A stretch of DNA of 64,000 nucleotides from Parasitella parasitica NRRL 2501 (Eukaryota > Fungi > Mucoromycota), in assembly GCA_025201805.1 (NCBI GenBank), contig MU619298.1, positions 16,647-80,646 of the forward strand, in the 5' to 3' direction. The notes under the pieces are model-generated. The model ran no database searches and was not told where the DNA came from. It worked only from the letters and a program-made list of their open reading frames with translations. Each line of letters opens with the position of its first letter. Within the stretch, counting starts at the first letter, position 1. The position numbers were made by a program, and so were the translations under genes. This document shows positions 1,504 to 14,953 of the stretch, piece after piece.

Positions 1504-1665
1504 CAGTGAACGCAGCATCAAATAGCGGGTTTAGAAAAATCAAAGTGCGCTAAATAAATATTCAAAGTGCAGCTTTTTCAGTACTCATTTTGCGGGTTTC
1601 TCAAAACTCAAATTGCGGTTTTTTGGGAAATCAATTTGCAGTTTTCTACGAAATTAAATTGCAGT
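1504..1665 (+). repeat. Left TIR of the Tc1 element, with internal ~22-bp periodic subrepeats
   Basis: Near-perfect reverse complement of 3061-3222. A (A/T)GC(A/G)G-type core recurs about every 21-24 bp. Confidence 0.9.
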
Positions 1666-1709
1666 AACTTTTTTTTTTAAAGAAATATTCTTTCATCTCT
1701 AAAGCTAAC

Positions 1710-3038
1710 ATGAGTACATACTTTTTTTACGAAAACGGACAAGGAAAGATTTTTGACGAACAAGGCAAAGATGCTATGGAATGGGTTGAAGAAGTTGATC
1801 CTTTTCATTTAGAAACTTTAACAACATTGCGAAAATACCAACAGGCTCAGCCATCTGAACAAGAATGGATGAGAGGCGAGCTGGATGAGACAATGAACGA
1901 AGTGGTTTTAAGAACAAAAGAAGAAGGCAACAAAAAAAGCGGAAAAAGCTATAAAATATATTCCCCTGACCAGAAGGTACTTTTTCTGTACTATTTGCAA
2001 GTGAAGTTGTATAAGGCTGCTAAAGCAGCTAGATTGTCGGGTGTAGCTGAGCGTACTGGTCAGCAATGGGCTAAAAGATTGAGGGATGAGCCTGAATGGG
2101 ATATTTTTGAGAAGCAAACGAATAAGGACAAACAAAAGACCGGAATGTTGCAACAAGAGCATAAAGAGCATATTATTAATCTATACGATCAAAGCCCCCA
2201 AGCACGTGTGGTAGATATTGTTGAAAGTTTGACGAAGTCGTTTGAGAATTTCAGTTTGAAAGAAACCAGTGTTCGTAACTTCATGAAAACTGAATGCAAT
2301 TTGTCATTCAAAAGAGCAACATTACATTCTAGTGAACGAAACTTTGAAGATAAACTTCGACAGCGCCTTGAATGGGTAGAGCGCTGGACATCAACTGATA
2401 TGGACTATCTTTCTAATTGTGTTTTTGTGGATGAAAGCGGATTTGACATAAATATGCGTCCACCTTCAGCCTGGTCCACAGTTGGTACACCGGCAATTGT
2501 GGAAACCAAATCGACCAAAGCAACTTCCCATACAATATTGGGTGCTATCAGTGCAATGGGGGTAGTAGACATTGAGCTTAGAGTGGCAGAAAAGCCCAAA
2601 CAACGTAAAATTGACGGTGTTGGAAGAAAAAGAAAGTACACACCAAATGTTAAAAAACCAAAAGGCACCACAACCGGCCACTGTTTAAATTTTATTCGAA
2701 AAACCCTGGATGAAATGGACAAAAACTCTCTTATGAACGGCTTTTATATTGTTATGGACAATGCGCCTATTTATACACATAGTGGTATTGACGAATTGAT
2801 CACTTCAAAAAGCTATAGAAGCATATATCTTCCCCCATATTCACCCGAGCTAAACCCGATTGAGCAATTTTGGTCTGTTGTAAAGAACAAGGTCAAGAGG
2901 GGCACGTTTTCTGATGATGAAGATCTGAAGACAAGAATTGCAGATGCATGCAATAATGTTCCTATTCAACATGTGAAAGCTTTTATACAACACTCATGTA
3001 ATCAATTCGAAAAGTGTAGAAATAAAGAACCTTTATAA
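1710..3038 (+). CDS. Tc1/IS630-family DD34E transposase, 442 aa
   Basis: N-terminal HTH-like region (AAKAARLSGVAERTGQQW). Catalytic motifs FVDESG, VMDNAP and YSPELNPIE, with 34 residues between the second D and the E. Confidence 0.95.
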   Translation: MSTYFFYENGQGKIFDEQGKDAMEWVEEVDPFHLETLTTLRKYQQAQPSEQEWMRGELDETMNEVVLRTKEEGNKKSGKSYKIYSPDQKVLFLYYLQVKLYKAAKAARLSGVAERTGQQWAKRLRDEPEWDIFEKQTNKDKQKTGMLQQEHKEHIINLYDQSPQARVVDIVESLTKSFENFSLKETSVRNFMKTECNLSFKRATLHSSERNFEDKLRQRLEWVERWTSTDMDYLSNCVFVDESGFDINMRPPSAWSTVGTPAIVETKSTKATSHTILGAISAMGVVDIELRVAEKPKQRKIDGVGRKRKYTPNVKKPKGTTTGHCLNFIRKTLDEMDKNSLMNGFYIVMDNAPIYTHSGIDELITSKSYRSIYLPPYSPELNPIEQFWSVVKNKVKRGTFSDDEDLKTRIADACNNVPIQHVKAFIQHSCNQFEKCRNKEPL

Positions 3039-3060
3039 TCATATAAATCCTTTTCGCTTT

Positions 3061-3222
3061 ACCGCTATTTAATTTCACAGAAAACTGCAAATTGATTTCC
3101 CAAAAAACCGCAATTTGATTTTTGAGAAACCCGCAAAATGAGTACTGAAAAAGCCGCACTTTGAATATTTATTTAGCGCACTTTGATTTTTCTAAACCCG
3201 CAATTTGATGCTGCGTTCACTG
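3061..3222 (-). repeat. Right TIR of the Tc1 element
   Basis: Reverse complement of 1504-1665 with only a few mismatches. Confidence 0.9.
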
Positions 3223-9949: not shown

Positions 9950-11591
9950 ATGAAACGCTCGAACGATTCCCAACAACAATCATATCAAGATGACAACAAA
10001 AAACCTCGTTATTCTATTCAAGGCTACAAGTAAGACTTCAATGTGTACTGGAATAGAAAAATAAAAGGACTAATGATTTATCAGTGATGTTTATGCTCAG
10101 TATAGTATGATGCCTCAATATAATCAAGCAAATCCATTTGCACAAGGTGCAGCTTCGTCTGCTGCGTATGGCGGATTTGCTCAACCGAATGCTGCCATGT
10201 ACGCAATGGGCTACGGTAATCCACAATCCATGATGGCTGGCCAATATGGCGGAGCCTACCCGCAATCGTTCAATACTGGTGCTGTTGGTTACGCTGCCGC
10301 TGGTGTTGGTGCTGGAGGCATGATGTCTGCTGAACCTAGCCGTACTATTTACTTGGGCAATGTCAACAAGGACATCGATCCGCACGATATTCTCAAGTGT
10401 GTTCACACTGGCAACATTGATTCATTCCGCGCTGTACCTGAAAAAAACTGCGCCTTCCTGACTTTTGTTGAGCCAGCTAGCGCACAAATGTTTTACCAAG
10501 AATTCCTTACCAAAAAGCTCGTGGCGGGAGAAACAGAGATCAAGGTCGGTTGGGGTAAGCCTAATACTATGCCACATGCCAAGAAGATGTTAATTCAATC
10601 GGGCGCCACACGCAATGTTTACTTGGGTCGCTTGACCGAGGCTGATACTGAAGAAACCATTCGAACTGCAGCAACAGCATTTGGTCCCATCGAGCAAATC
10701 AAACTACTCCGCGAGAAAAATATTGCCTTTATTCACTATCTTAGTATCGCATCCGCTACGAAATGCATCACTGCCTTATCTGCAGACCCAGCTTGGAAAG
10801 ACAAAAAGGTGAATTATGGTAAAGATCAATCTTCGGATATGGTTGACCAATTCAATCCCGTTGGCGCATATGGTAACCCTTATGGAGGTGTTGGAGGTTT
10901 TGCTGGTTTCGATCCCTATGGTATGAACGCTGGATATGCGATGCAAGCCAACACGGGCACAGTTCAGCGTACGCTTTACTTTGGAAATGTTCATCCTGAA
11001 GCAACTTGTGAAGATCTATGCAATATTATCCGAGGCGGTGCATTGTTGCAAATCCGCTTCTTTCCTGAAAAGCATATTGCATTCGTTTCATTCATGGACG
11101 CAGAAACCGCAATGACAGTTTTCAACCACGCAGCTACTACTGGGTTTGTTATTAAGGGAAGAAAGGTCCGTGTTGGCTGGGGCAAACCAAACACCATTCC
11201 TCATCAAGTAGCGATAGCCTTTCAAAATGGAGCAACTCGTAATATTTATATCGGCGGTATCGATGACAAATTTTCTATTGAAAAATTGCGCACAGATTTC
11301 TCTGAATTTGGCGAAGTGGAACTAGTGAATGTCTTTAAGGAAAAAAACTGTGCATTTGTTAATTTTACAAGTATTGCAAACGCAATGAATGCACTTAAAG
11401 GAATCAAAGCAAAGCCTGACTATGCTGATGTCAAGATTAATTATGGTAAAGATCGCTGTAGCAATCCTTGGAAGCTGATGAAAAGAAAAGTAGTAGGCAA
11501 TGTTTCTCCTGGCACTAAGAAACATGAAAGTGATGAGCATGCTGATGATCTGAAGCATTTGAAAGGCAATAACGTTAAAGACGAGTTTTAA
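9950..11591 (+). CDS. Four-RRM RNA-binding protein, Nrd1 (S. pombe)/Mrn1-like
   Basis: Duplicated RRM pairs (SRTIYLGN...KNCAFLTF...IKVGWGK; GATRNVYLG...KVNYGKD). Exon 1 is 9950-10029; intron 10030-10084 joins in frame to the 10107 ORF. Confidence 0.88.
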
Positions 11592-11594
11592 TCA

Positions 11595-11790
11595 GGTTGT
11601 TTTCTACCCTAGTACAGTTGTACTGATTAATTTTGTCAGTTTTAAAAAAATAAATATTGTTAGTAAAAAAATGAATGTCGTTTGGCAAAAGACAAATGTC
11701 ACTAACCTAAGAAAAAATATCTGTTAGCTCAAAAGTACGTGCCTGCATTAAATAACCAGGGCGTTAACCTTGGTGGAAAGTTTCTGTCTT
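11595..11790 (-). ncRNA. Candidate Fanzor omega-RNA (scaffold from the ORF 3' end through the TIR, guide from flanking DNA)
   Basis: Position inferred from known TnpB/Fanzor architecture. Minus-strand hairpins ACCAAGGT-TAAC-GCCCTGGT and GCTAAC-AGA...TCT-TAG-GTTAGT are visible. Boundaries cannot be determined from sequence alone. Confidence 0.4.
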
Positions 11791-14750
11791 TGTTGTCTTG
11801 AGAAAATTGTCGGTCGTCTGCCTGTCTCCCTCAAGGAGACTAAAATCCTTCTGAAGTTTAATACAGCTGCAAGATCTCGATTCCATAGTCGGTTTTCATT
11901 GCTGAAACACACACTGCTTCGACATCTTGAACAAGATTAGTCTTCATAATCCAATGTTACGTGAACATATATATTTTTTTTTATTTACCTTGTTAGGCCA
12001 TGACACTTTACAGTGGGCATTTTGTGGCGTTGATATGGTCTAGAGTTTCGGATTGTTTTAAACTTTTGATCGAGCTTGCCACCACAGCCTGGGCAGAGGG
12101 AAGATGTTTTGTATTCGCAGCATCTTGATCAATCCAGCGTTTCTAATTGGTTCATGGTATTTGACGTTTGGTGCAGACCAATTTCCAATTACCAGAACTG
12201 AATTCGATCCAAACTTCGTTTTCAACTTGTTTACCAACTGCGCATCATTTTTGTCGTAGTATAATTTGCTTGAAAACTTGAGTTTTCTGNNNNNNNNNNN
12301 NNNNNNNNNNNNNNNNNNNNNNNNNNNNNNNNNNNNNNNNNNNNNNNNNNNNNNNNNNNNNNNNNNNNNNNNNNNNNNNNNNNNNNNNNNNNNNNNNNNN
12401 NNNNNNNNNNNNNNNNNNNNNNNNNNNNNNNNNNNNNNNNNNNNNNNNNNNNNNNNNNNNNNNNNNNNNNNNNNNNNNNNNNNNNNNNNNNNNNNNNNNN
12501 NNNNNNNNNNNNNNNNNNNNNNNNNNNNNNNNNNNNNNNNNNNNNNNNNNNNNNNNNNNNNNNNNNNNNNNNNNNNNNNNNNNNNNNNNNNNNNNNNNNN
12601 NNNNNNNNNNNNNNNNNNNNNNNNNNNNNNNNNNNNNNNNNNNNNNNNNNNNNNNNNNNNNNNNNNNNNNNNNNNNNNNNNNNNNNNNNNNNNNNNNNNN
12701 NNNNNNNNNNNNNNNNNNNNNNNNNNNNNNNNNNNNNNNNNNNNNNNNNNNNNNNNNNNNNNNNNNNNNNNNNNNNNNNNNNNNNNNNNNNNNNNNNNNN
12801 NNNNNNNNNNNNNNNNNNNNNNNNNNNNNNNNNNNNNNNNNNNNNNNNNNNNNNNNNNNNNNNNNNNNNNNNNNNNNNNNNNNNNNNNNNNNNNNNNNNN
12901 NNNNNNNNNNNNNNNNNNNNNNNNNNNNNNNNNNNNNNNNNNNNNNNNNNNNNNNNNNNNNNNNNNNNNNNNNNNNNNNNNNNNNNNNNNNNNNNNNNNN
13001 NNNNNNNNNNNNNNNNNNNNNNNNNNNNNNNNNNNNNNNNNNNNNNNNNNNNNNNNNNNNNNNNNNNNNNNNNNNNNNNNNNNNNNNNNNNNNNNNNNNN
13101 NNNNNNNNNNNNNNNNNNNNNNNNNNNNNNNNNNNNNNNNNNNNNNNNNNNNNNNNNNNNNNNNNNNNNNNNNNNNNNNNNNNNNNNNNNNNNNNNNNNN
13201 NNNNNNNNNNNNNNNNNNNNNNNNNNNNNNNNNNNNNNNAACGAAGGCTTTGAAGTGGTTTTCTGGATTAGCCTTTACATCGTAGAAGATTGAGCCCATT
13301 TTAAACTTGTAATTTTCTGGGTATGCCGACAAGAAAGTTTGTACTTTTGGTTTTGATGATTCATTCAAAATATCAACGTTGGGCATACCTTTTTTAGCTA
13401 CAGCTTATATAACTTGATCACAGGGATTGTAAGCCTTTTGTCGTATCGCTTCTTTAATAGCTTCTTCACTAAACGCATTGGACGCCATTTCTTTACGGAT
13501 GGTTTCCGCTCTTTCTTTTTTTTCACAGAGCTTATTTAGTAGAGTTCGCAATCTATTTCCAAAATGGGTCTTTATGTTGTTAAGATAGGCAGTTTGGATC
13601 TTGGTGCACTCATATAGTGCTATTTGTTGAGCATTCACCAGTTTGATTGGAGTATAATTCGCGTTTTCCAAGTAAGATTGTTGATATTTTGCCATGAACT
13701 TCCTGTACTCCGCAGTCGTGTCTTTAAGCTTAGCAGACCTGCGGGTAGTATTTTGGGCAATCAGAGACAAGAACACTTCCACAAAGAATTCTTTTCGCAC
13801 AAATTCATTCAAGTTGAAATTGCTGTTTGTGGCCAGTTCTTTCAAGAACATGTATTTTGAAAAAGCAAATGTGTGAGTGATAACTGTATGAGTAGTATTC
13901 ACTAGATTATGCAATGGCTGCAAATATTCTGGTTTCCATATATTTTTGATAGTTGTTTTCACTGTCATCACCTTTTTTCTTGTTTTCTCATCAAAGTTTT
14001 TCGTTGTAGAACCAGGTTTGGTAGCAGTAGAGTCAGACTTGGAAGTAGTAACATTAGGTACATTCATGAAATTATCTGGTTGTGTAGTCTTGCTTGATTC
14101 ACCTATCATTGGACCTTGAGCATTGGTGTTACGAAAGCTGATCTTGCTTGTGCTACCAATTTCGTCTTTGGCCCTCTTTCTTGCAGAATTGTCGCTTTGT
14201 TTACCTATGTAATGGGTGTTTAAAATGCTTTGAATCTTCAACACTTATGAATATAATGTGCTTATACATACTTCTTTTTCTAAAGCTTACTGATGGCTGA
14301 ATATCATCATCTGAATTGTCGGTTATAATTTTTTCATATGTGTCTACCATCATAGCTTAAATTAGTAACGTTTTGATCAGAAATTAACATGTATCTTTAC
14401 CGTTTCTGTTCTTTAAAGACTCCTCTTCAGAGCAAGAAGTAGAAGTGTCCTTCCGAATTTTCTTCATCTGTACTTTTCTGAAGGGAATAGTTATTTATAT
14501 ATTGTGTCTTCAGAAAATTAGTTTGAAAAAGAAACAAATGTGTAGAAAAAAAACAAGACAAAAAATATTTATGGAGGATGCATTGTAGGTTCTGGTAACG
14601 ACAATATGTGCTTTTAAATATGACAATTATTTTTGTTGAAATCGACATTTAATTTTGAGGAAACACCATTTATTTTTTTCCAATGGATGTTCATATTCCA
14701 ATAAACGCCATTTGTTTTTTCAAAATGGACAAAATTTACAGGTTGCACTG
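11615..14750 (-). mobile_element. Non-autonomous Tc1/mariner-type TIR element carrying a Fanzor1 gene
   Basis: Imperfect TIRs TA|CAGTTGTACTGATTAATTTTGTCAGTTTTAAAAAAATAAAT (11615-) and TA|CAGTGCAACCTGTAAATTTTGTCCATTTTGAAAAAACAAAT (reverse complement from 14750). TA on both flanks (11613-14, 14751-52). ~21-bp periodic subterminal GACA-type repeats. Internal Fanzor ORF. Confidence 0.75.
11748..14467 (-). pseudogene. Fanzor1 (eukaryotic TnpB-like RuvC RNA-guided endonuclease), intron-containing, disrupted
   Basis: N-terminal TVKTTIKNIW...HTFAFSKYMFLKEL. C-terminal VLVIGNWS...HEP, EYKTSSLCPGC, CHGLTR|CRSSVC zinc-finger region, RLWNRDLAAVLNF (RuvC-III) and a GRRPTIFSR tail. Predicted in-frame introns 14344-14400, 14205-14271 and 11926-11988. 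In-frame TAA at 13405-13407; frameshifting deletion at ~12117. RuvC-I is presumably inside the N gap 12290-13239. Confidence 0.85.
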
Positions 14751-14953
14751 TATATCGAAAAATAAAAAATATAATGTAGTATTCTGCCACCCAGCCAATA
14801 TCCTCTTGAGTTATACAGGTGCAACGGCACACATTTGGTTTTAATGATAAAACTCAACAATTTTTTTTTGCTCTTTAATACAATACGGTACAAAGTGCTA
14901 CAAAGCTGTGTTACAGAAAACAGATGAAGAGAAGATACATTTCTTTCGATTTT

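Follow-up and report, generated by a model that had tools for sequence, protein, structure and literature searches.

A decayed Fanzor1 gene in a probable non-autonomous Tc1/mariner-type transposon of Parasitella parasitica

Fanzor1 proteins are RNA-guided DNA endonucleases of eukaryotes whose guide RNA begins close to the end of the coding region and extends beyond the element into the flank, the target-adjacent motif (TAM) lying at the other end (PMC10432273, PMC10530073, PMC11423790). An association of Fanzor1c with Mariner/Tc1 has been confirmed (Jiang et al. 2023, PMC10530073), and elements in which Fanzor1 is the only gene, with mariner ends and TA duplications, such as PUl-4, were described by Bao and Jurka (2013, PMC3627910), who, in the portion of their paper used here, also name MuDR-type Fanzor elements for the Mucorales and 10 Fanzor1 families in Mucor circinelloides, with superfamilies given for some of them. 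The closest characterised enzyme is Parasitella parasitica Fanzor1 (PpFz1; PDB 9cf0-9cf3; Xu et al. 2024, PMC11423790). Here we describe a locus in a stretch of 64,000 nt (hereafter the window) from P. parasitica NRRL 2501 (GenBank assembly GCA_025201805.1, contig MU619298.1, positions 16,647 to 80,646 of the forward strand), of which positions 11615-14750 are one copy of an element of about 3.2 kb with a gene on the minus strand. Judged by its sequence, this gene is a Fanzor1 gene and a paralogue of PpFz1, with a presumed function in RNA-guided DNA cleavage; the copy itself is a dead pseudogene. Transposons of this kind have been known since 2013, and what is new here is another dead family member.

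The identity of the gene was assessed by searching its parts exon by exon, not as one joined spliced protein, against the sequences of the PDB. Three stretches of the window matched PpFz1 (PDB 9cf0), namely window:13408-14244:- (E 1.8e-73, chain residues 478-701), window:12124-12288:- (E 2.3e-17, residues 1097-1149) and window:11751-11933:- (E 5.7e-10, residues 1218-1256), and the exons also matched the Spizellomyces Fanzor1, more weakly. In the sibling copy C201, a central exon with a 452-codon open frame covers the part that is lost in an assembly gap of the window and matches PpFz1 collinearly with E 2.8e-142, GKCVLMDPGRRDLLYCMKETS being identical. These matches uphold the Fanzor1 assignment made in an initial annotation from the letters of the sequence, and the motifs, element ends and TA flanks that it named were all found where it had placed them. 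On the minus strand, VLVIGNWS lies at about 12195, EYKTS at 12116-12102, CPGC at 12095-12084, CRSSVC from 11925 and WNRDLAAVLN at about 11885. The C-terminal motif of Bao and Jurka ([TS][TS]-x-x-C4 zinc finger-x(5,50)-RD) is thereby present together with the RuvC-II glutamate, its residues reading E-Y-K-T-S-S-L-C-P-G-C ... C-H-G-L-T-R / C-R-S-S-V-C ... W-N-R-D, here shifted out of the frame of the upstream part by a 32-nt deletion.

Compared with PpFz1, the family is collinear over the whole protein, with very strong matches, and the two share the RuvC-I block, the E-x-x-T-S RuvC-II motif, a split zinc finger and WNRD. The siblings also keep the FRI, a RuvC insertion, with a YPQP loop that by hand count corresponds to the cyclophilin-contacting P614/P616 of PpFz1. 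The family differs in being a separate paralogue, about 60% identical by eye, and in that all of its copies are broken. Homology to SpuFz1 of Spizellomyces punctatus (PDB 8gkh; Saito et al. 2023, PMC10432273) is distant (E 4e-29 for a sibling exon). An intact gene of the family would consist of four exons of 67 + 72 + 2296 + 178 = 2613 nt, or 871 codons, a sum that assumes a gap of 998 nt, as in sibling C101, and the restoration of 32 nt from sibling C57. Because the four exons sum to a whole number of codons (871, PpFz1 having about 849 residues), the intron model is supported; exons 1 and 2 together make 139 nt, which places exon 3 in the frame of the long open reading frame (ORF). The introns, stop codon, frameshift and gap by which the initial annotation explained the absence of the gene from the ORF track were all located (introns and gap in Table 1, coding lesions below).

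On the gene strand the element spans from 14750 (CAGTGCAACCTG...) to 11615 (...CAACTG), with TA directly outside both ends (14751-14752 and 11613-11614), and as inverted repeats the two ends are identical at 33 of 47 positions. At least 14 copies, with 83-98% identity, were recovered by a DNA search of this genome (450 contigs, 32.8 Mb), in line with the expectation, drawn from the collapsed gap, that siblings exist; among them C57 is complete and ungapped, at 3,193 bp. Within this genome, homology breaks exactly at TA/CAGT (14750) in 14 independent 5' ends and at ACTG/TA (11615) in 8 independent 3' ends, so that sibling boundaries coincide with those first proposed, which are therefore not due to chance. 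TA flanks all six two-ended copies (2.2-5.0 kb) and nearly all single ends, and it follows 8 of the 8 intact independent 3' ends. The element inserted at TA and duplicated it, and the TA duplications and CAGT ends of its many copies agree with the earlier description of a TA-targeting transposon with terminal inverted repeats (TIRs). Both junctions of the window copy with unique DNA were also found in contigs of three DNA runs. It is hardly credible, with multiple copies, exact ends and TA duplications at unrelated loci, decay in all copies and deletion derivatives that have spread, that the gene was domesticated by the host instead of being cargo of a transposon, a reading whose single point in favour is the presence of introns. 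In S. punctatus, too, many full and partial copies of SpuFz1 occur in one genome; that genome differs in holding 134 ghost elements devoid of the ORF. Such ghosts with the ends of the window family were looked for here as well, and none was seen, all 5' ends from a pattern search belonging to Fanzor-bearing copies.

Neither the window copy nor the complete copy, C57, was found to have a transposase, and in the siblings the region of the gap holds only Fanzor coding sequence; the only DDE_3 domain within a sibling belongs to a separate element nested in the C10 copy. Since there is no transposase inside it, the element is non-autonomous. A search with the pattern of the end repeats also recovered a related family, CAGTGCGGCCGGGAAATATTGTCC, with ends paired about 1.85 kb apart. 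This related element is 1,874 bp long, with perfect 120-nt end repeats, TA duplications and at least 6 copies, and its open frame of 476 codons encodes DDE_3 (85 bits) and helix-turn-helix domains; by these features it is apparently an intact autonomous Tc1/mariner. Its end repeat is identical to the 5' end of the Fanzor element at 36 of 45 positions (80%), and subterminal motifs of the AAATGGCG type recur in its 120-nt end repeat. The Fanzor element is very probably a non-autonomous Tc1/mariner-type transposon with Fanzor1 as its only gene, and both the mariner affiliation and the sole cargo of the initial annotation can be retained. The elements of the PUl-4 type are alike in having Fanzor1 as sole cargo, ends like those of confirmed mariners of the same genome and TA duplications, and they differ in host and family; the ends here are 80% similar, not identical, to those of the autonomous element.

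The central part of the gene at this locus falls into the assembly gap, the edges of which map to consecutive parts of one protein (PpFz1 chain residues of about 758 and 1097, with about 338 residues between). Four siblings carry 959-998 nt between the same edges, with order and orientation kept, and in C101 one 479-codon open frame crosses both edges with 998 nt (3n+2) between them. The 950 N of the window are an estimate and by chance also 3n+2, and a 442-aa ORF that runs through the X residues is therefore an artefact. The site of the RuvC-I aspartate, for which a DPG-like motif had been predicted, lies inside the gap, and the motif is present in the siblings across this region, as GKCVLMDPGRRD in open frame in C101 and C201; C57 has LMDPGRRD in a frame broken just upstream. 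The block is identical to that of PpFz1. All read data were Logan contigs, and no contig from four public runs spans the gap, those that reach it entering family sequence from both edges. Continuity of the Fanzor sequence across the gap at this locus is likely, and the comparison with siblings indicates that the gap hides the WED, RuvC-I and FRI parts of the Fanzor, not a transposase. The opposite reading, in which the element is autonomous and its transposase gene sits in the 950 nt, draws on the gap being unread here; it is very improbable, given that the 959-998 nt of the siblings are all Fanzor coding sequence collinear with PpFz1, that the gap is too small for a transposase of at least about 350 residues plus the 332 missing Fanzor codons, and that run contigs pass from both edges into family sequence.

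Several points weigh against the account of a Fanzor1 family carried by a Tc1/mariner-type transposon and provided with a guide RNA. Pfam returned nothing above threshold for the exon pieces or for the 452-aa open frame of the sibling, with a Cas12f1-like TNB below threshold (E 0.0036 and 0.25), and for this reason the Fanzor1 identity rests on the PDB sequence matches. The gap is unclosed at this locus, where a nested insertion or further damage may lie. The acting transposase is suggested by TIR similarity, 80% over 45 nt. The Ka/Ks ratios among copies, 0.4-1.0, are close to neutral decay and not decisive, so that they provide weak evidence for past selection on the nuclease in the family. 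Finally, the contigs of X7, a run only guessed to be RNA, contain no informative joints for the guide RNA of the family.

Three lesions were identified in the window copy. The first is an in-frame TAA at 13407-13405 (minus strand), where the C57 sibling has CAA; contigs of the DNA runs X1 and X2 read CAA at this site and one X7 contig reads TAA, and this is the least certain of the three. The second, relative to C57, is a deletion of 32 nt at 12116/12117, which causes a frameshift immediately ahead of the RuvC-II glutamate and is common to the window and C101 copies. In the third, the GT of a conserved splice donor in the tail of the gene (11737..11742, minus strand), directly after TAATGCAG, is mutated to GC (GCACGT), which may matter if the tail is spliced. 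The window copy is in addition a mosaic, 97.8% identical to C57 in its 5' 1.5 kb and 89.3% in its 3' 0.7 kb, which points to recombination among copies or to mixing during assembly. Such mixing, to which the surroundings of a collapsed gap are prone, could be extended to suppose that the gene is intact and active and that the stop and the remaining defects arose in error when many near-identical copies were collapsed during assembly, as the mosaic sequence and the CAA of X1 and X2 might suggest. We consider this unlikely: the 32-nt deletion also occurs in the independently assembled C101 and is hence a real variant of the family, one X7 contig does have TAA, an open exon 3 is found in no copy across the assembly, and the run contigs are short, drawn from all copies and not assignable to this locus.

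The initial annotation had left room for intact copies elsewhere, but every copy examined is broken, and neither 15 loci nor the matches that the C-terminal exon gave across the genome included an intact one. An uninterrupted exon 3 would take about 765 codons; the longest open frames have 479 and 452. An in-frame deletion of 813 nt, by which RuvC-I and the FRI insertion are lost, has identical junctions in C161, C76, C50 and C105, and a deletion of 311 nt has identical junctions in C101 and C201, C101 thereby sharing one deletion with the window copy and another with C201. Where the outer ends of these deletion derivatives survive, their flanks differ from copy to copy. The presence of the derivatives at several loci with differing flanks indicates that copies without the nuclease kept transposing, and hence that the nuclease is not needed in cis. 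The continued movement of copies lacking the catalytic core separates the role of the nuclease, probably one in retention or homing, from transposition; a single copy by itself matters little, and it is as a natural data set that the family is useful.

The insertion sites themselves are asymmetric. Of 14 copies, 13 have TATA as their 5' flank, and at the 3' end TA is followed by non-TA in 8 of 8. The TAM of PpFz1 is 5'-ATN (PMC11423790), and if the guide starts after the duplicated TA, the guide match in an empty site would be preceded by (T)ATA, in agreement with this motif. The TATA at insertion sites thus matches the TAM of the closest characterised enzyme, a link that has mostly been shown in vitro, and the nuclease may have had a role in retention or homing like that of TnpB. 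There is, however, an appreciable chance, though short of even, that the 5' TATA is unrelated to the nuclease, either because the first TA is part of an element with asymmetric ends or because it reflects a site preference of the transposase. The ends of the CAGTGCGGCTGG family, too, often have an A at position -3 (6 of 10, mostly GATA). Tc1/mariner elements prefer AT-rich surroundings of their TA. A symmetric preference, on the other hand, predicts TA after the 3' duplication too, which is seen in 0 of 8 copies; none of the four ends of the autonomous element is TATA (AATA, GCTA, CATA and GCTA); and the TAM of SpuFz1 is CATA, which likewise ends in TA and adjoins the left repeat, where published locus schemes place the TAM (PMC10432273, PMC11423790).

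The resulting model would have the transposase of the 1,874-bp element, or a close relative of it, move the Fanzor family in trans. In ancestors with an intact gene, transcription of the 3' end would have yielded a guide RNA reaching from a stem-loop inside the last codons to the flanking DNA, and the nuclease would have cut the unoccupied site (TATA plus right flank), with repair copying the element back, a step that has been shown for bacterial TnpB. The window copy is capable of none of these steps, being inactive because of its in-frame stop and its frameshifting 32-nt deletion. The bacterial TnpB of IS200/IS605 elements belongs to the same RuvC nuclease fold family, its guide RNA likewise starts at the 3' end of the gene and extends into the flank, and the motif beside the opposite end of the element is its TAM; it differs in having TnpA as partner, whereas here a DDE Tc1/mariner enzyme would act in trans on an element whose gene contains spliceosomal introns. 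Retention by cutting of the empty site is the TnpB model, and it is only by analogy that it would extend to the Fanzor family.

Candidate features of a guide RNA can be traced at the 3' end of the gene, where the coding sequence resembles the first part of the PpFz1 omegaRNA, shares its stem-loop 1 and has a splice donor where that RNA has one. By hand count, window positions 11783-11746 are identical to nt 1-38 of that omegaRNA (Table S3, PMC11423790) at 30 of 38 positions. The counterpart of stem-loop 1 has one compensated pair and one A.C mismatch here, and its folding energy is unremarkable (z -0.67). The tail donor is GTACGT in 5 of 9 copies (alignment A1), among them C161, C76, C92 and C10, and GCACGT in the window copy, and CTGAC is invariant in the tail; PpFz1 has CAG/GTAAGC at the same scaffold position (nt 38/39), its guide starting at nt 50 (PMC11423790). 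Past the donor site, the PpFz1 scaffold is unrelated to the sequence of the family. A tentative and rather doubtful reading of this arrangement is that the spliceosome completes the guide RNA of the family, and perhaps that of PpFz1 in its native host, by joining the donor after TAATGCAG to a CAG 8 nt from the transposon end; from their sequence, this CAG (11625-11623) and AACTGACAAAATTAAT are the candidate acceptor and branch point. If so, a spliceosomal intron would remove the whole subterminal repeat region and leave a 48-nt scaffold, composed of stem-loop 1, a CAGU/ACUG mini-hairpin and UA joined directly to the flank, close to the 49-nt scaffold found experimentally for PpFz1; a spliced tail would also explain why the 3' repeat departs from the 5' repeat exactly in its outermost 14 nt. 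The splice signals of the 3' tail could in this way explain how a short guide scaffold comes to adjoin the flank in spite of the long end repeat between them. More conventionally, the scaffold would stay unspliced, at about 170 nt.

In X7, depth is zero over 14137-14374, an interval that takes in the greater part of intron 1, the whole of exon 2 and intron 2, and 68 nt at the start of exon 3, which is weakly suggestive as a sign of splicing. The contigs of the runs showed no splice joint; one joint in X7 from 11707 to 11808 was considered as a splice and rejected, as it has no intron ends and probably stems from a diverged copy. The splicing of guide RNA is not mentioned in the main Fanzor papers searched, including PMC10432273 and PMC10530073. 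The general pattern of stem-loop, stop and GCAG junction was recovered only in this family, in one decayed distant Fanzor (C107) and as a chance match in a homeobox gene, and a 20-nt piece of the PpFz1 omegaRNA, searched with as many as 2 mismatches allowed, had no match in the assembly.

The outermost 11 nt of the 3' end (11615-11625, and siblings in alignment A1) form a mini-palindrome, CAGT-loop-ACTG, whose stem is kept while its loop varies among copies (ACA, TCA, CTA, CCA, CA, CGT). It is absent from the 5' end and from the autonomous element, and the two end repeats differ most there.

Table 1. Coordinates of the element, its gene and its flanks in the window. Exons and introns are given for the minus-strand gene.
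Feature	Positions	Strand	Description
5' TA target-site duplication	14751..14752		another TA precedes, giving a TATA flank; 13/14 independent 5' flanks are TATA before CAGT
5' terminal inverted repeat	14706..14750	-	CAGTGCAACCTGTAAATTTTGTCC...; homology among copies stops here
Subterminal region, then 5' untranslated leader	14468..14705	-	repeated motifs like AAATGGCG / AAATGTCG, read directly; a promoter role is conceivable
Exon 1	14401..14467	-	ATG at 14467; 67 nt; donor GTAAAG follows
Intron 1	14344..14400	-	57 nt, GTAAAG...TACTAAT...TAG; predicted from splice signals and frame
Exon 2	14272..14343	-	72 nt; encodes DDDIQPSVSFRKRS, resembling DDDFQPPIIRRKRSS near the PpFz1 N-terminus (PMC11423790, Table S3)
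Intron 2	14205..14271	-	67 nt, GTATGT...TAG
Exon 3, first part (REC/WED region)	13240..14204	-	match to PDB 9cf0
Assembly gap	12290..13239		siblings: 959-998 nt of Fanzor coding sequence (WED, RuvC-I with GKCVLMDPGRRD, FRI insertion)
Exon 3, last part	11989..12289	-	VLVIGNWS, 32-nt deletion, then EYKTS (RuvC-II) and CPGC out of frame
Intron 3	11926..11988	-	63 nt, GTAAAT...CAAG; lies within the zinc finger, with CHGLTR before and CRSSVC after it, as in every sibling
Exon 4	11748..11925	-	CRSSVC, WNRD (RuvC-III), C-terminus; stop TAA at 11750-11748
Counterpart of PpFz1 scaffold stem-loop 1	11755..11774	-	ACCAAGG / CCCTGGT, 7 bp, within the last codons; predicted hairpin
3' terminal inverted repeat	11615..11660	+	holds the invariant AACTGACAAAATTAAT; CAG at 11625-11623, 8 nt from the end
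3' TA target-site duplication	11613..11614		8/8 intact independent 3' ends
Flank that would template the guide if guide RNA is made	11593..11612	-	within the 21 nt before the element, runs into the stop of the neighbour; placed by the Fanzor/TnpB layout (PMC10432273)

The element lies 21 nt past the stop codon (11589-11591) of a 494-codon gene with an RNA-recognition motif (ORF 10107-11591), to which the Fanzor gene is convergent. In X7, the possible RNA run, a contig of 1,658 nt (depth 447) extends from this gene across the junction and covers 37 nt of the element; the transcript of the host seems to reach into the transposon end, or the contig may simply break at the repeat. For the intervals 11400-11642 and 14726-14950, runs X1, X2 and X4 yielded junction contigs of identical length (8,448 and 1,670 nt) under two organism labels, and these runs are probably from the same strain or species.

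A different Fanzor1 gene (L074, G000:C16:44573-46433) has a 529-codon open exon (GKCVFIDPGRRDMLYCM), is 56% identical to the window family in the C-terminal part and much shorter across the stretch that holds the FRI insertion in the siblings, and lies outside any CAGT-ended element. It may represent a better-preserved family; as a comparison for the window family it was set aside as uninformative, at 56% identity and in another type of element without CAGT ends. The Fanzor copy on C10 (L043, G000:C10:177665-182622) is broken by the nested autonomous mariner mentioned above (end at C10:178502, DDE_3 at 178851-179105) and by runs of N.

Other Tc1/mariner-type elements were also encountered. A separate one occupies window positions 1579-3147 and encodes a DDE_3 domain (88 bits) in an open frame of 456 codons (1668-3035). 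It has end repeats of another type (CAGTACTCATTTTGCGGG), matching at both ends, and is apparently not the partner of the Fanzor element, which lies 8.5 kb away. The other ends of the CAGTGCGGCTGG type belong to a related, transposase-bearing family. One 3.85-kb element with such mariner ends (L070, G000:C99:54852-58705) contains a transposase remnant and a 456-codon open frame whose Pfam matches, to RNase H (E 1.2e-4) and to Dam DNA adenine methyltransferase (E 6e-6; 26.5 bits, the cut-off being 28.1), fall below threshold, recalling the methyltransferase-carrying mariners of Bao and Jurka (2013). Two further loci with the same CAGTGCGGCTGG ends (L071, G000:C45; L072, G000:C68) have an open frame of 331-355 codons that has no Pfam match, starts with an RY-repeat stretch and lies beside split pieces of a transposase.

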